A DNA stretch of 28,997 nucleotides from Paramicrosporidium saccamoebae KSL3 (lineage: Eukaryota; Fungi; Cryptomycota): contig MTSL01000199.1 of the NCBI GenBank assembly GCA_002794465.1, positions 1 through 28,997 of the forward strand, written 5' to 3'. The position numbers were made by a program, and so were the translations under genes. The number at the start of each line of letters is the position of its first letter. Within the stretch, counting starts at the first letter, position 1. This document shows positions 1,324 to 11,193 of the stretch, piece by piece. The notes beneath the pieces were generated by a model, which was not told where the DNA came from, made no database searches, and saw nothing but the letters and a program-made list of their open reading frames with translations.

Positions 1324-4300
1324 ATGTGGTCAGAGAATGTGCAGGTAGGCCATGGACCGTAAAGTAACCTGCACAGAGGCGACTGCTCAAGTTTGTGTTG
1401 AGACGGACAATGAGCAGATTCATCTGCCTGGAGAGCACCGAGCTGGAGAACTTTGAGCTGCAATGGTCCGAGGGCAAGATTACGATACGTAATGTCGCGC
1501 TAAATGTTGCCGTACTATATAATGGCATTTGGGATGAAATTCTAGTCGTTGAATCGATATATTAACAAGACGCCTGTGGTACTGAAGGAGGGTTCATTGG
1601 CAGAATTGACTATTACACTTGCGAGTCTCTTGGAGGGTGGGGGCGAGATTGCTTTGCATGGGTTGGACCTGAAATGCACGTCAGTCAGCGAGGATAGCAT
1701 GGTATTTTATGATGCAGTGGAAAGTAGTTTGCTGGATGGTAGTGTTGGACGATTTGCCAAGAATTTTGTGGCTGACTTGCGCATTGACGAGTTTCGTGAT
1801 GCGGAAATATGTGATAGTGAGATCAATAAGAGTGAGTCTCACGATGGCGACAAGAATGTAGCTTCTTCCAGCGGGGTGGACTTGTTGGAACAGGCAATTG
1901 GAGCCTTGCTTGGTAAATTCAACCTCGTCATGACAGAAACGAAAATCACTCTGCAAGGACCACAGAATTACCAAATGTTGGCGATCAATGTCCCCCGAAT
2001 AGAGGCATGCCAGACTGCAGGATTAGCCGAGCTCTTCATTGAGGCAATGGAAGGATTTAACGTGAAACTACTGAATCGGGAAAGGGAGCGGGTTATCGTG
2101 TCCATGACAAGGCCGTTTCCCGTATCCATTAATTTTACCAATTTCCTGATATCGGCCAAGAATTCGGCCTTGCTCATCGACATTACTCCCGACGATGTGG
2201 TCTTGTTGCGAGAATTTGCAAGAATCTACAAGTCCCAAGGCTTTGGCACTGATATCCGCCAGCAGTTTGGCTTGGATCTAATGGTTAAGAACCCAGTAAT
2301 CTTACTGAGCTCTAGTCTTGAACTGACTACAGCGAGTCTCCATTTAAAGATGGGGAAGGAATTGTCCTTTGAGATTGACAAGGCGGAAATTCGATACAAT
2401 GATGAGCCAATCCTTGTCTGCCCAAGCGTTCGAAAATCGCTGCCGTCCAAGCTAGAGTTTTCTAAAATTTCCATTTCCAAGCATCCAAAAGTCCTGCTGC
2501 CCTTGTTTGATTCTTATAAAGCAGTATTGAACTCTTCAAAGCATGCAACCTCCTTCACAACCTATCTAAAGATTGATGAGATTGAATTTGACAATGAGCA
2601 TACAGTCAAGATGACAGAGATTGAAGTAAATATGGATTCCAGACAATGGGCCATGCATGTAGGCAAATTTACAGCTGCCGTTAATGCTACGAGGATAGAA
2701 TGCTCCCGAGTGTCAATATTCCGTTCCATTAGAGGATCTCGAGCTGATGATGCCGTTGTTGTCGATGCTAATAGCACTGGCAATACTAACAGCCCTTGCG
2801 GTACTAAAGCTTCCTCGTTGCATTCGCCATTTGCTGAAATGGCGACCGTCATCGAGGGGAGTTTATTTGTCGGAGTAGTAGCTGTGCCTGAAGAGTATTT
2901 TCTGCTTCGTTCCCGGCTCATTGAAGATTCCAACGTGCATTATCATATTTCAGCGGACCAGGTCAACATCAGAGGGTCTGCCATGGCCGAACTGGATGGT
3001 CTACTCAGCCAAGTCGTCACTGAGGGAAACAAGCAAAAAGTGTGTTACACGGCATCCATCCTTCATATGAGTCTAACCGAGGCGCATGTGACGGCTGTCG
3101 CGGAGGGAATCGAAGCGATCCAGTTTTCGAGCAATATGGGATCTGTAACAGATTTACGAATGGACTTGATCGAGTTGTCTACGGAAACTATGCCTTTGGT
3201 GAAACGGGCATTGACAGTGTCGCTTGATCCCCATTTTAAGCCGCTTGTCATTTCCAACCGAAAAACTCTTGGAGAAGCCGAGTGGAGTATGTGCCTCTCC
3301 GGTGCTATCATTTCAATCCCAATCTATGATGACTTGTTTCAGACGCTATGGAAACAGTTTCCGTTTTCCAGTGCGGCAGCTAGCGAAACTATAACAAAAT
3401 GGAATGTTCAATTGAGCTTATGTAGCATTCAGACAAAGCTTCCGGGTGCTTATCAGGAAAAGATTGCTCCACACACACTATATATGGACAAGGCCCGACT
3501 AATTTGTGACGACAAGGAGCCTTTATTGTTGTTTTTGCAGAGGGGAGAGGTGTTCTTTGCACCCGGGCCAGGACTTGTGATGCCAGTAACAGGGCTATTT
3601 GACGAAGGCCATAACTACTGGGAGGAGCAGAATTACGAGGCATTATGCAAGTTTGACTTTTTGCCCATATCTTTAACCCGTACTGATGGCTTCTGGCAGA
3701 TTCGAGTCGAGAATAACATGATCACAGTGGATCTGTTCAAGGATTCGGTTACGACGGTTACGGAATGCGCAAATTTATATTTGCAACTTGTCCGTGATCA
3801 GAGGATCAAGGAGTATCCCAGTCCGTCAACGGACAGTTGTGTTGACAAAGAAGATGGCAAAATGTCATCAGTTCTGGAGTGTATTTATGAAATGGACCTT
3901 GAAGGCGATTTCGGCGGAAATGGTTTTAGTGCATCTCAAGTGGTAGACTCGAACTTGAATCTTGAGAAGAATTCGTTGGACCTTGAGGAAGAATATTACT
4001 CCTATGGTGGAATGGACTCTATCCCAGATGACGATCTGGAAGGAATGATTGAATTGCCGCTTCCAGAAAGCCTTGTCGCGGAGGAAACTGCAGATGCTCC
4101 GAAGACTGCCGAGGGGGAGAATCTGAATTTTGATGATGACTTTTTTGCCACCAAGGTAGAAGATGAAGAGGTTCACTTTCCATTCTCGGAAAGCCAAGAT
4201 GAGATTTTGGCCCGGGTGCAGATTGCCGATTTCTCTATTGCAATTCGCATGCACTCGGGGAGACAGTGGAGTCCCAACCGGAGCAGCCATGTTGGCACAA

Positions 4301-5720
4301 GGCAGGAAACACAGTTTACCCCAGAATTTCGGGAGAGGAGAAGCACCCTGTCCTCATCGGCATCATCAAGATGGTCCAACTTGGGTGGATCTTCAAAAAC
4401 AAGCTCATTCCGGACCATTCCCAAGGATGATTCGGTAGAATTTGTGATCCGGGGACTGAACGCCGAGTTGGATTGGAGTAACCCTTTTCCACCCGAACTG
4501 GTGGCACCAGACATGATCCTCGCTGCCATGAGGATGTCTGTTAAGAAGGTGGAGATTATGGATCATGTGCGATCGTCCAGGTGGAAGACATTTTTGACGA
4601 GAAGGATAGCAAAGGGGGAAACAGGACCGATGATCCAGCTCAAGGTAGAGATGAATTTTGTGGAAAGGGAAGAGCACAAATTGTTGCCTGAAGATCAACT
4701 GGAGGCGACCATCAAGCTGGATGTGGAGCCTCTCCGCTTACACATTGATCAAGACACGTTGTTGTTTATGCTTCGGTTTCTGGACAGCAAGCCGACTCGG
4801 AGAGATGTCAGACCCATGTTTTTTGGTTTACCCTATAACTGTGATTAATTTGTTTAGAAAAGTTTCAAATGTCGGAAATGTCTATCCGATTGGACTATAA
4901 GCCAAAAAAGGTGGATTTCAAAAAGTTTGCCAATGGAAACTTTGTGGAATTGCTGAATCTGTTTGAGCTGGAGGATGCAGAGCTGCAACTGCCGCCAGTG
5001 ACAGTGAGAGGGATCAGCGGCACGGACGGACTGCTTAACAGCGTAATTGGGGCATGGCTGCCATTTGTGCGAAACACCCAAATGCCACAAGTGATGAGCG
5101 GTATTACGCCAGTACGGACGCTCCTTAATTTGGGTGGAGGAATGACAGATTTTGTTCTGCTTCCGATTGAACAGTACAAGAAAAACGGAAGGATATTCCA
5201 CGGCCTGAAGAAGGGAACCCGTTCGATGCTCCACCAAACTGCGCTTGAGACAGCAAGGCTAGGGAAAAAGATTGCAGTGGGAACACAGGTGATCCTGGAA
5301 CAGGCTGATGATCTGATTGAAAATGATCCAAGACGAGAGCTGGAACGATGCGAGCGCAAGCTGCAAGGGGTGGCGACTACCAGTAAATACTCAGCCCCAC
5401 CCTCTGATGCTACAGAGGGACTACTCTCTGCCTATGGGAGTCTGTCCACTGGCATCCGGAGTGCTGCCCAAACTGTCATTGCTGTTCCCATCCAAGTGTA
5501 TGAGCGACGTGGTCCGGGAGGCGCAGTAAAGGCCGTGCTGCGTGCAATGCCCATTGCCGTACTGCGATCAATGATTGGGGCCAGTGAAGCCGTGGGAAAG
5601 GCGCTAATGGGTGTGGAGGGTAGTTTGGATCCGAGTCTGGGTGTGGAAATTAAGCAAAAGTACAAAACGGTGGAGGATCGGTATGTGGACAGCGAACCAA
5701 GCAGTCTTCCTGATCAATAA
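1324..5720 (+). CDS. ATG2: Autophagy lipid-transfer protein ATG2, about 1432 aa; exons 1324-1344, 1377-1511, 1546-4825, 4858-5720
   Basis: The spliced N-terminus MWSENVQRRLLKFVLRRTM...ITIRNVALNVASLN...LKEGSLAELTI is a chorein-N domain. The C-terminus has FFEKFQMSEMSIRLDYKPKKVD, GNFVELLNLF and an ATG_C-like helical tail. Three GT-AG introns (32, 34, 32 nt) all restore frame. Confidence 0.9.
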
Positions 5721-7539: not shown

Positions 7540-7555
7540 GGTAACCAGGGTATAC

Positions 7556-7648
7556 TAGTTGGCTATGTGACGTATATGGTTGATTAGTTGGCTATGTGGC
7601 GTAGATGGTTGATTAGTTGGGTATTTGACGTAGAGGGTTGATTAGTTG
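7556..7648. repeat. 29-nt tandem repeat, about 3.2 copies
   Basis: TAGTTGGCTATGTGACGTATATGGTTGAT / TAGTTGGCTATGTGGCGTAGATGGTTGAT / TAGTTGGGTATTTGACGTAGAGGGTTGAT / TAGTTG, head-to-tail with no spacers. Confidence 0.9.
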
Positions 7649-7748
7649 CTGGGTATTTCAGGACATTGAAATGTGTATCCATACTATTCTAGGATTAGCA
7701 ATGAACAACCCCCCTTCCCGTCTGTGGTATTATCCCCACTACGCGACA
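7566..7748 (-). mobile_element. Solo-LTR-like / short dispersed element, copy B (183 nt, 3' end tandemly amplified)
   Basis: The minus strand reads TGTCGCGTAGTGGGGATAA...GGGGGGTTGTTCATTGCTAATCCTA...TAGTATGGATACA...TGTCCTGAAATACCCAGCAACTA...TACGTCACA and is colinear with 25039-25188 over more than 100 nt. Confidence 0.65.
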
Positions 7749-7904
7749 CGACTATGTGTAGGCATTCATGTCACCCCGATTACACTGTACAATATACAAT
7801 AAATGTAAGATAGTACATAGAAAAGATTTTCTTGATAGTTTCAGTAGGTTCAGATGACCCCTACCGAGTCGAATTTTGATTGGCCCAGAGTAGTAATTTT
7901 CGCC

Positions 7905-9701
7905 ATGAACATGAACTACCTCTGCATGGCGTTCCTCTTGGCTGTAGGCGCATCTGGCAGCAAAAAGCTCCTTAGTGAGCCGACTGGTGTTAACACCAGT
8001 ATGTTGCAGATTGAACACTCAGGCGCCCGCACCAAGATGGTTAGTTACTGTTCTGGAGCACATGCCACTCTAGTTACGAGCGGTAACCGTCTCACCATTG
8101 AGGAGAATGGAGCGTTTGTAATGGTGATCCGTGACAAGACATTATTCTACCCAAAGAGCGTCTTTTACGTCAATGATATGCCGGCTACGGAGCCTGCAAT
8201 ACTAGGAGCTGGCCCGGGATCCTTTTGGAATCACATTGGAATGGGCATGCCTTCTGAGGAAGATGACTTGGCTCGCGCCATACGTCTCTCTTTGCAGGAT
8301 GTGGCACATGGCGGCCAGGAAGACGACGATATAGCCGAGGCCCTAAGACGGTCGTTGCAAGATGTCAATGGTGAGGAACGAGAGGAAAAGAGTGAGGAAC
8401 GGGAAGAAGAAAGTGTGGGACGGGAGGAGAAAAGTGTGGGACGGGAAGAAGAAAGTGAAGAACGAGAGAGCAAAAACGAGAGCTTAGGTCCCTCTGATTA
8501 CAGCGAATCGCATGACGAGAATGTTAAAAGTCCCCGCAGGAGTGCCAAATGCCCGCGAACTGTCTTTTTTTTATCCAACGACAGTGAAAGCTCTGCCAGT
8601 ACCAAATCATGCGATGGTAATATCAACAATGGCGAAAAGAGTAGCTCTATTAGTAACGGATCCGAGGTTAGCAGTATTCAATCTTTGGATGCAAGCGGCT
8701 CTTCTGAACTTGTGCCGAGTTTCGAAGAGGTTAGGAGTAACAGTAGAAGTGGAGCGGAAAAAAGAAGCTGCAGCAGCTCAGGCGAGTCGGAGCGCCCGCT
8801 AAAGAGACGGCGCATCGAACCGAAAGCGGCCGCATTGGCACGACCACCTCCTACTGAAACTAAATCAGCGGAAGACGACGCCGTTGAGCATCTCTCTGGA
8901 CGGCCGATGAGTGTCATGGAACGGGAAGGAGTCAACGTCCCATTCAGAAACTCAAAGGGCGCCACAGTGATACTGGAAGAGGGTGATCTGGTGGTGACTG
9001 TGATGAACGTATCTTTAGGCGCACAAATCAAGCTGGCAAGTCTATTGAATATACTCTTCACTGTAGACACTGCTGTCAACATGACTAAGCTGGGGACAAA
9101 CTCCTCTGGTATCGTGCCAGTTCACATTACGGGACAATTCTTCCAGTCCTTCCTCTCCATCAAAGAGCTCGAGGAAAAGACAAAGGGGACGCATCAGCCA
9201 TCCGAGGTCGTCGCCGATCAAAAGTTTGTGATTGACCCAAAGGTGACTTTTCAGGGACGGCCTAGTGGCGTGAGAATGTCACGTCCTGATTCGGAGGATC
9301 TCTTGGTGGCTTTGAATGGATCTCACGCGATCCAGGCATCCGCTACGATGGACAAGGACGGAAAGTCGATTTTGTTGTCGATGAAAGGGGGCGCATGTGC
9401 CCTGTTGGTAAGGAATGGCGACATTGTCAATACAGAGACACTTCCGTACACTGAATCCCAAGAACCGGCTGTTCAGCCTGGCCATAGTTGCACGGAAAAG
9501 ATTGCAGTTGAGGACGAAGATGTAGTCCTCCTGTTTGTGCCAATTGGCGGTAAAGTACAGACGACATTGGGAGCTTGGGCCATGTCTGTTGGGTTTTCTT
9601 CGGACGAAATGAAGGAGTATTCCCAAAAGGCATACGAGTTGCTGGCACCGAAATCGGATGTTGCAGTCCTCATTACTAGGATTTCCAAGGCGCAGCAATA
9701 A
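7905..9701 (+). CDS. Orphan, putatively secreted protein: signal peptide, 2 UIMs, acidic/Ser-rich linker, bipartite NLS, degenerate PP2C(PTC7)-like domain
   Basis: Long uninterrupted ORF with ATG at 7905 (CGCCATG) or 7911. N-terminus MNMNYLCMAFLLAVGASG is hydrophobic. UIMs EEDDLARAIRLSLQD (8256-8300) and EDDDIAEALRRSLQD (8319-8363). KR-x12-KRRR at 8760-8813. C-terminus ATMDKDGKSILLSMKGGACALLVRNGDIV...EDEDVVLLF...KSDVAVLITRI resembles PP2C/PTC7 strands. Confidence 0.75.
   Translation: MNMNYLCMAFLLAVGASGSKKLLSEPTGVNTSMLQIEHSGARTKMVSYCSGAHATLVTSGNRLTIEENGAFVMVIRDKTLFYPKSVFYVNDMPATEPAILGAGPGSFWNHIGMGMPSEEDDLARAIRLSLQDVAHGGQEDDDIAEALRRSLQDVNGEEREEKSEEREEESVGREEKSVGREEESEERESKNESLGPSDYSESHDENVKSPRRSAKCPRTVFFLSNDSESSASTKSCDGNINNGEKSSSISNGSEVSSIQSLDASGSSELVPSFEEVRSNSRSGAEKRSCSSSGESERPLKRRRIEPKAAALARPPPTETKSAEDDAVEHLSGRPMSVMEREGVNVPFRNSKGATVILEEGDLVVTVMNVSLGAQIKLASLLNILFTVDTAVNMTKLGTNSSGIVPVHITGQFFQSFLSIKELEEKTKGTHQPSEVVADQKFVIDPKVTFQGRPSGVRMSRPDSEDLLVALNGSHAIQASATMDKDGKSILLSMKGGACALLVRNGDIVNTETLPYTESQEPAVQPGHSCTEKIAVEDEDVVLLFVPIGGKVQTTLGAWAMSVGFSSDEMKEYSQKAYELLAPKSDVAVLITRISKAQQ
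8373..8470 (+). repeat. Imperfect 21-nt coding repeats (EEKSEER / EEESVGR / EEKSVGR / EEESEER)
   Basis: GAAGAAGAAAGTGTGGGACGG / GAGGAGAAAAGTGTGGGACGG plus flanking variants, read directly from the sequence. Confidence 0.8.
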
Positions 9702-9948: not shown

Positions 9949-11193
9949 ATGCTTCCTGCAGTCGTAATTGACAATGGCACTGGGTACGGGCAGCGTGACG
10001 GACGTTGCTAATCCTCGTATAGGTACACAAAGATGGGGTATGCCGGCAATTCATCTCCGCAATTTGTCATCCCAACGACGATAGCCACCCGTCCTAAGGA
10101 CGACTTTGACTTTTACATTGGCGACGAGGCCCAACAGGCCAGCAAAACACACTCACTCCATTATCCCATCCGCCATGGCCAAGTGGAGAGTTGGGACCTC
10201 ATGGAGTCCTACTGGCAGCATTGCTTCTTTCGTCATCTCCGCTGTGACCCCGAGGAACACGCCGTTTTGCTCACGGAGCCGCCATTGAATGCCCCCGAGA
10301 ATCGCGAGTTTACAGCAGAGATTATGTTTGAGAGTTTCAATGTGCCCCAATTGTACATTGGAGTGCAGGCGGTGTTGGCATTGGCGGCCAGTTGGATGGA
10401 TGCACGGGCAACGGACAAGACTGACAATCCGCTCACCGGATGTGTGGTGGACAGCGGAGATGGTGTTACTCACATCATTCCAGTGGTTGATGGCTATGCT
10501 ATTGGAAGCGCCATCAAACATGTGCCCTTGGCGGGACGAGAAGTCACCTTGTTCCTCCAACAGCTATTGCGTGATCGTCCAGACATCAAATTGTCCCCGG
10601 AGGACTCAATGGAGGCTGCCCGACGCATCAAGGAAGACCAATGCTATGTCTGTCCGGATCTCCCTCGCGAGTTTTTAAAATTGGACCAAGACCCCTCCAA
10701 GATTGTGCAGGCTTTTGAACTAGGAAATGGGACCAAGCTGGACGTTGGACACGAACGATTCCTTGCACCCGAGTTATTCTTTAATCCCGAAATGAGCGGA
10801 AATGGCTCCTTTACCACGCCCCTCCCCACTCTGGTGGATGATGTCATCCAGGCCTGTCCTATTGATTGTCGTCGCGGTCTCTATCGTAACATTGTCTTAT
10901 CCGGCGGGTCGACCATGTTCAAGGACTTTGGGAAACGTATGCAACGGGATCTCAAGAGCATTGTGGAGGAGCGACTCTCATACACCAGCAACTTGGATGC
11001 TGTCAACAAGTCGGCCGTACCTCAAGTCAATGTCGTGGCGCATCAGAACCAGCGCTATGCTGTATGGTGTGGTGGAAGTCTGTTTGCATCGATGGATTCA
11101 TTCCCTGCCTATTGCCACACCAAGGCAGAGTATGAAGAATTTGGTCCGTCCATTTGTCGTCAGTCCCGCGTTTTTGGTTCACTTCTATGTTAA
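9949..11193 (+). CDS. ARP3: Actin-related protein 3 (Arp2/3 complex); intron 9984..10022
   Basis: Spliced start MLPAVVIDNGTGYTKMGYAGN. Internal LLTEPPLNAPENREFTAEIMFESFNVPQLYIGVQAVLALAASW and PIDCRRGLYRNIVLSGGSTMFKDFG. C-terminus YEEFGPSICRQSRVFG. The 39-nt intron has a GCTAAT branch site. Confidence 0.97.

Follow-up and report, generated by a model that had tools for sequence, protein, structure and literature searches.

We analysed the first 28,997 bases of contig MTSL01000199.1 (assembly GCA_002794465.1), hereafter the window, with a focus on one open reading frame (ORF) that encodes the 615-amino-acid (aa) protein P0001. This protein has one record in public assemblies, on the same contig. 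MTSL00000000 is the genome of Paramicrosporidium saccamoebae (Rozellomycota), which has 3,750 protein models; the organism, a relative of Microsporidia, forms polar-filament spores and lives as an intranuclear parasite of Saccamoeba (PMC5701793). An earlier note on this DNA (the original prediction) had read the gene as a candidate effector for the host nucleus with a signal peptide, tandem ubiquitin-interacting motifs (UIMs), a bipartite nuclear localization signal (NLS) and a pseudo-phosphatase, and had guessed at an intracellular or intranuclear rozellid as its source, which P. saccamoebae is indeed. At the locus, we found a signal-peptide-like N-terminus followed by a conserved N-domain, a disordered loop that carries two UIMs and an NLS-like pattern, and a conserved C-domain (Table 1). 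The best reading of the sequences is that the gene belongs to a small, fast-evolving family that is restricted to Paramicrosporidium-type Rozellomycota. Its codon composition is native (GC content at third codon positions 0.52), which led us to reject a foreign origin.

Table 1. Position of the gene for P0001 and of its features in the window
Feature	Position	Strand	Basis or remark
Target ORF P0001, 615 aa + stop	7854..9701	+	single exon; in-frame stop directly 5' of M1
Signal-peptide-like segment M18-A33, MNMNYLCMAFLLAVGA	7905..7952	+	uncharged hydrophobic run, small residues at -3/-1; equivalent in relatives
N-domain, aa 35-110, beta-rich half-module, motif NGAFVMVIRDKTLFYP	7956..8183	+	conserved in P0002, L006, L011
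Acidic disordered linker/loop, aa 111-349	8184..8900	+	composition; no alignment between relatives
UIM1, EEDDLARAIRLSLQD	8256..8300	+	Pfam PF02809 and consensus regex
UIM2, EDDDIAEALRRSLQD	8319..8363	+	consensus regex
Tandem repeat, 21 nt x 5, encodes run EEREEKSEEREEESVGREEKSVGREEESEERES	8371..8476	+	repeat search
Bipartite-NLS-like KR-x12-KRRR, aa 303-320	8760..8813	+	pattern match
C-domain, aa 350-615	8901..9698	+	begins with conserved RPMxxMER motif
Divergent promoter region, 315 bp, common to target gene and Mak5/DDX24	7540..7853	.	holds 29-bp x 3.2 tandem repeat

The N-terminal segment and the start of the protein

The strongest hydropathy peak in P0001 is formed by its N-terminal hydrophobic segment (aa 13-34; YLCMAFLLAVGASG spans aa 22-35), in agreement with the hydrophobic N-terminus that had been described before. 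With a heuristic check of the hydrophobic core and of the -3/-1 residues, we found an uncharged hydrophobic run of about 12-16 aa, YLCMAFLLAVGA, followed by VGA and S, with a probable cleavage site between VGA and SG. The same check detected uncharged runs of 14-16 aa in four relatives (P0002, L006, L011 and L007; see the section on relatives for their origin), and an equivalent N-terminal segment is present in these four and in L002x. The -3/-1 sites of P0002, L006 and L011 read AGA, IRG and GNA, respectively, each of them before S. A signal-like N-terminus was not found by this check in 8 control ORFs of the window. According to the von Heijne rules, a short uncharged core followed by small residues at -3/-1 marks a cleaved signal peptide, and a core of this kind is short for a membrane span. 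P0001 neither ends in HDEL nor has a hydrophobic C-terminal tail, and the N-terminal segment is its only hydrophobic one. The N-terminal signal of the original prediction is thus borne out by a signal-peptide-like start in every relative found. Because all relatives begin with such a segment, entry into the secretory pathway appears to be a conserved trait of the family, and we consider it likely that P0001 enters this pathway.

Alternatively, the segment might stay uncleaved and anchor the protein in the endoplasmic reticulum (ER) or the nuclear envelope of the parasite, with the remainder facing the parasite's own cytosol or nucleoplasm. In that case, the UIMs would bind ubiquitinated proteins of the parasite, and the NLS together with the long disordered linker would lead the protein to the inner nuclear membrane. 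Such a topology would resolve the conflict between secretion and motifs that work in the cytosol without any export, and it is consistent with the lysines (GSKK) that follow the hydrophobic stretch in P0001, with the length of this stretch if M1 is the start (about 21 aa) and with the 23-aa stretch in L002x. However, the 14-16-aa stretches of P0002, L006, L011 and L007, with their small residues at -3/-1, have the usual form of cleaved signal peptides and are short to cross a membrane, the folded N-domain follows directly after the hydrophobic segment, and the relatives have neither UIMs nor NLS. We regard a parasite-internal anchor as improbable.

The annotated ORF starts at M1, 17 codons upstream of M18 (7905), which the original prediction had taken as the start. 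The first residues of the relatives align at M18-M20 of P0001, which favours M18 or M20; M18 and M20 have a purine at -3, where M1 has a C. The hydrophobic segment is retained with either start, being 17 aa longer if M1 is used. The residues past the predicted cleavage site align between relatives (SEPTGVNTSMLQIE vs SEGTGINTNTLEIT), and this conservation indicates that the segment is translated. We consider a start further downstream than M18/M20 unlikely, given that the relatives align with the hydrophobic segment and with the residues that follow it. The presence of four Met codons within the first 25 codons and the poor context of M1, with its C at -3, would be in line with an annotation artefact in which translation really begins at a Met further downstream (M50 or M62) and the hydrophobic segment is an untranslated leader. 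An untranslated leader is not expected to align at the protein level, whereas here the segment and the next 20 residues do so with relatives that share only 25-37% identity elsewhere, and we consider an artefact of this kind extremely improbable.

Modules, loop and motifs

The two ends of the protein are conserved. The N-domain shares 38% identity with P0002 over 88 aa and was matched in L006 and L011 with E-values of 4e-6 and 2e-6, respectively, and also with a hidden Markov model (HMM), while the C-domain shares 25% identity with P0002 over 265 aa (E 2e-14). A second occurrence of the N-domain motif L-x-I-x-x-NGAFVMVIRD-x5-P lies at aa 485-527 of the C-domain (hhalign E 2.3e-4). In addition, ATVILEEGDLVVTVMN with a helix has a counterpart in EKIAVEDEDVVLLFVP, likewise with a helix (E 0.02), and a 213-aa paralogue from the locus of a metagenomic relative aligns with the second of these units over 76 columns (E 0.016). 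Each of these signals is modest, but they are colinear, and P0001 probably consists of two copies of one unclassified alpha/beta module of about 160 aa, the first of which is split by a 240-aa loop. In this arrangement, aa 350-445 would complete the split first module and aa ~455-615 would form the second. The equivalent of the loop measures about 17-23 residues in the paralogue and in the second unit.

No Pfam match was obtained for the C-domain, and sequence and profile searches of the PDB gave no match either, the best being a ribosomal protein L25 sequence at E 0.8. The pseudo-phosphatase of the original prediction gained no support from Pfam, from the PDB or from a profile comparison with PP2C. 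The Pfam families PF00481, PF13672 and PF07228 (PP2C, PP2C_2 and SpoIIE) were absent at E<=10 from P0001, its C-domain, P0002 and P0005, and no phosphatase family was found at E<=1 in the other relatives. When compared by hhalign with a PP2C alignment (three sequences, validated by Pfam at 1e-88), 21 columns were matched with an E-value of 0.13 and a probability of 0.4%; both profiles are shallow, which gives this comparison low power. The idea nevertheless has a visible source, since PP2C-like motifs can be lined up by eye and in order (RPMSVMER, VMNVSLGAQ, GGACALLVRNGD, DVVLLFVPIGG and SDVAVLITR), with the metal-binding Asp residues replaced. The sole hhalign match also falls on the expected stretch (LLSMKGGACALLVRNGDIV vs YFINCGDSRGLLCRNRKV). 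However, the 'GD' stretch belongs to the motif that is repeated in the N-domain and in the 213-aa paralogue, and for this reason it looks like a repeated strand pair and not like a catalytic motif. A degenerate PP2C/SpoIIE-type fold of the C-domain would be compatible with any other reading of the protein and would place it, as an analogue, beside the PP2Cs that parasites secrete, Toxoplasma PP2C-hn among them; given the short match and the lack of Pfam and PDB support, we judge this fold to be very unlikely.

The loop between the two conserved parts contains 73% disorder-promoting residues, has a net charge of -21 and was modelled by AlphaFold2 with a predicted local distance difference test (pLDDT) score below 50. 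It could not be aligned with P0002. Both UIMs and the NLS-like pattern sit inside this stretch of about 240 aa. Immediately downstream of UIM2 lies the coding tandem repeat, which can also be read as 42 nt x 2.5 and encodes a run rich in E, R, K and S; it suggests recent slippage in the disordered loop.

UIM is the sole Pfam family matched by P0001. UIM1 scored 23.6 bits against PF02809 in the whole protein and 30 bits (E 3.7e-7) as a peptide, with a cut-off of 21. Of the two consensus UIMs that had been proposed, both are found at their positions and both fit the consensus acidic-acidic-x-Phi-x-x-Ala-x-x-x-Ser-x-x-acidic, in which Ala and Ser are invariant (here L139/A142/S146 and I160/A163/S167), but UIM2 did not pass Pfam. 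In 20,000 composition-preserving shuffles of P0001, at least one strict UIM appeared in 18 and at least two in none. The pair is not a chance match. UIM1 and UIM2 are identical at 11/16 residues and 30/48 nt, and 8 of the 11 identical residues are encoded by different codons, so that the motif residues were held while silent sites diverged. This suggests selection on the UIM motif; if the two UIMs arose by duplication, the duplication is old. Their central alanines are 21 residues apart and the linker reads VAHGGQ. Both AlphaFold2 runs placed helices at about aa 136-150 and 158-171, with pLDDT below 50.

The basic pattern KR-SCSSSGESERPL-KRRR, which had been reported before, is present as well and conforms to the classical rule (KR, a spacer of 10-12 residues, then at least 3/5 K/R). 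Other basic clusters occur in L011 and L007, and none in P0002 and L006.

These motifs bear on another explanation, in which P0001 is a secreted structural or surface protein of the parasite, for example of the spore wall, polar filament or cell coat. Its modules would do the work, and the UIM- and NLS-like stretches would be incidental and have no ubiquitin or importin partner. In line with this, conservation within the family extends to the signal peptide and the two modules but not to the motifs, and the loop changes quickly, as judged from its 21-nt x 5 repeat and from the lack of alignment between relatives. Moreover, the genome paper did not identify the polar-filament proteins of P. saccamoebae, for which fast evolution is to be expected (PMC5701793), and an NLS pattern alone is weak evidence. 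On the other hand, two strict UIMs never occurred in the shuffles, UIM1 passes Pfam, and the UIM copies keep their motif residues despite many silent differences. Selection on the UIM motif would be left unexplained in a structural protein, because ubiquitin is not present outside cells. We consider a purely structural role rather unlikely.

Relatives and gene order

A phmmer search over 1.84 billion representative proteins returned one true relative, P0002 (649 aa, E 1.6e-11), which comes from two JGI metagenome contigs. The gene order with P0002 is WD40, ATG2, Mak5/DDX24, target gene, (Rrn7), Arp3, cis-prenyltransferase, Iml2 and PPTA. Between the genome of the window and that of P0002, the identities are 76% for Arp3, 55% for Mak5, 54% for Iml2, 51% for WD40 and 35% for ATG2. 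With 25% in its C-domain, 38% in its N-domain and an unaligned middle, the target gene is the most diverged of the block. The original prediction had considered it as inserted into this conserved block. It is not an insertion, given that the gene stands at this position in relatives as well; judged by these identities, it is the fastest-evolving resident of the block.

Further relatives were sought with Mak5 as an anchor, by reading its neighbours in 11 more contigs. L006 and L011 hold partial orthologues that are oriented divergently from Mak5, as in the window, and that run off the end of the contig; in both, a clear signal segment, an N-domain and a long acidic stretch are present. In L007 (NCBI assembly GCA_047514055.1), a 587-aa gene with a signal-like start occupies the same position. 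This gene gave two weak colinear profile matches (E 0.007 and 0.028), making it a weak candidate orthologue. The 213-aa paralogue is located between ATG2 and Mak5 of the metagenomic relative (L002 6887-7528, minus strand). It has a hydrophobic N-terminus and a single module and lacks the disordered loop; where L002 holds it, between ATG2 and Mak5, the window has only a 226-bp gap. No other paralogue was seen.

Six contigs hold other genes upstream of Mak5 (L005, L008, L009, L010, L012 and L013). These are an unrelated partial ORF in L005, Rrn7 in L010 and L012, and a same-strand gene in L013, while in L008 and L009 the nearest recognisable gene is an O-fucosyltransferase (O-FucT). In L004, nothing was called within the 781 bp available upstream of Mak5. 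Because other Mak5 loci hold different genes at this place, and in view of the HMM scan, the target family is not universal in the clade. As a refuting observation, the original prediction had named clear orthologues with a housekeeping role in free-living fungi; in the phmmer search of 1.84 billion representatives, no orthologue was detected outside a narrow rozellid clade. Two metagenome scans yielded no further relative. Word-indexed homology searches, with the whole protein as well as with a two-sequence alignment, returned only the query, probably because low-complexity words filled the candidate list. The other hit of the phmmer search, the predicted protein P0003 (475 aa, E 3e-6), was rejected as spurious: five near-identical 97-aa units were matched to aa 85-144, and the score seems to be inflated by these repeats and not to reflect homology.

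Other features of these loci are given here for completeness. The promoter region between Mak5/DDX24 and the target gene contains a 29-bp tandem repeat at 7556-7648 (3.2 copies, 90% matches), which may be a shared regulatory element. The Arp3 model that starts at 10033 lacks its first exon: an ATG exon at 9949-9983 codes for MLPAVVIDNGTG, and a 39-nt intron at 9984-10022 (GTACGG...TGCTAAT...TAG) joins it in frame to 10023, giving MLPAVVIDNGTGYTKMGYAGN, the canonical N-terminus of the actin fold. ATG2 was called as two ORFs in the window (1549-4848 and 4869-5720), with about 20 bp containing stop codons in between. It is likewise split in L006 (4615-9202) and forms a single 1386-aa gene in L002; the cause is a very short intron that escaped annotation or else a split of the gene that is conserved. 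Between Rrn7 and the O-fucosyltransferase gene upstream of Mak5, both L009 (2719-5663, minus strand) and L008 (1331-4187, minus strand) harbour four tandem, cysteine-rich paralogues of about 200 aa with signal-peptide-like starts. From their sequences, these look like a separate secreted family at loci without the target gene.

Proposed action and comparison with known systems

Taken together, the reading that we favour is that P0001 is secreted by the parasite, becomes exposed to the host and acts in the host nucleus by means of its loop motifs. We find this effector idea plausible and hold it tentatively. A cleavable N-terminal signal peptide would take the protein into the secretory pathway, and the parasite would release the mature two-module protein, which would thereby become exposed to the host. 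The NLS would bring it into the host nucleus or keep it there. It might be used while the parasite has yet to arrive in the nucleus, or to retain the protein once the host has divided. On their flexible VAHGGQ linker, the paired UIMs would provide avidity for poly- or multi-ubiquitinated host proteins, presumably without a strict choice of linkage if known tandem UIMs are a guide, and the conserved modules would perform the core activity of the family. For the separate parts of this scheme, our confidence falls with each step beyond secretion: exposure to the host seems nearly as probable as its opposite, and an action in the host nucleus that depends on both the UIMs and the NLS we regard as doubtful.

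Several observations weigh against this scheme. As a peptide, UIM2 matched no Pfam family at E<=1. The bipartite pattern arose by chance in 349/20,000 composition-preserving shuffles (1.7%) and is on its own only mildly improbable. In the relatives found, neither Pfam nor a loose regex detected any UIM, and the bipartite pattern is absent from all of them; the motifs thus appear to be an addition in the P. saccamoebae lineage, and the conserved function of the family does not need them. AlphaFold2 gave no confident fold (mean pLDDT 34.6 with the single sequence and 32.3 with a 4-row alignment). A single paralogue was seen, unlike the large expanded families of host-exposed proteins in microsporidia. 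Finally, an NLS would not be strictly necessary for a parasite whose place is already in the nucleoplasm.

In its boldest form, which we put forward as speculation and hold to be unlikely as a whole, the model describes a secreted family confined to rozellids, with a duplicated module not described before, in which the loop would serve as an evolvable platform for host-mimicking motifs. P. saccamoebae would have gained a tandem-UIM reader and an NLS on this platform, and P0001 would be the first effector from the fungal/microsporidian lineage to read ubiquitin and to target marks in the nucleus of the host, such as ubiquitinated chromatin proteins. Secreted parasite proteins with host-mimicking short motifs are known already; new, as far as our searches reach, are the family, its module and the way in which a signal peptide, tandem UIMs and an NLS come together. 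The text of the P. saccamoebae genome paper (PMC5701793) reports no secreted proteins or effectors and does not contain the terms 'secret', 'effector' or 'signal peptide'. The target gene provides a concrete candidate, with a conserved export signal and with UIM and NLS motifs only in the species known to live in the nucleus. If the model is true, host-directed motifs can join an older secreted scaffold through a disordered loop, and the gene offers a way to examine the effects of the parasite on the nucleus of its host. If the model is wrong, the family would still be a new, clade-specific secreted one with an unclassified fold.

The known tandem-UIM ubiquitin receptors RAP80, ataxin-3, Rpn10/S5a, Vps27 and the epsins are cytosolic or nuclear and are not known to have a signal peptide. 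P0001 resembles them in having two short acidic-Phi-xx-A-xxx-S motifs, putative helices, close together. Its Ala-to-Ala spacing of 21 residues comes closer to that of ataxin-3 (about 20) than to that of RAP80 (about 25). It differs from them in its unrelated flanking domains and in the Gly-Gly of the UIM linker, which makes a continuous linkage-setting helix unlikely.

For a protein anchored inside the parasite, the points of comparison are PPM1L, which is ER-anchored, and yeast Heh1/Heh2, inner-nuclear-membrane proteins whose targeting is driven by an NLS and a long disordered linker. In both, an N-terminal or single hydrophobic anchor is combined with a domain that is exposed to the cytosol or nucleoplasm. 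In contrast, the stretch in P0001 measures 12-16 aa and has a signal-peptidase-type end, and no homology was detected to these proteins.

The host-exposed proteins of Nematocida have a targeting signal, are clade-specific and fast-evolving, mostly lack Pfam domains and in some cases reside in the host nucleus (Reinke et al. 2017, PMC5423893). The target gene shares all of these sequence-level properties, and its profile of targeting signal, clade restriction and fast evolution fits that of microsporidian host-exposed proteins. There is no sequence similarity, however, and the Nematocida proteins mostly belong to large species-specific families, whereas the target gene has one paralogue. Their host exposure was established by proteomics, while that of P0001 is deduced from sequence.

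For the full architecture in the original prediction (signal peptide, targeting to the nucleus and an enzyme-like domain at the C-terminus), the closest analogue is PP2C-hn of Toxoplasma gondii, a PP2C of the rhoptries that reaches the nucleus of the host (cited in PMC7793252). It is not a homologue of P0001. PP2C-hn is a recognisable PP2C from an unrelated parasite and is not known to have UIMs, whereas the domain in P0001 has no significant match to PP2C.

Encephalitozoon EnP1 is secreted, enters the host nucleus in an NLS-dependent manner and interferes with monoubiquitination of H2B (PMC11348272). It resembles P0001 in coming from a related parasite lineage and in combining secretion, an NLS and a link to ubiquitin, as proposed for P0001. 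EnP1 is not a homologue and has no reported UIM; it binds histone H2B, whereas P0001 would read ubiquitin directly via its UIMs. With EnP1, the sister lineage offers a known case of a nuclear effector that depends on an NLS and touches a ubiquitin mark (PMC11348272).

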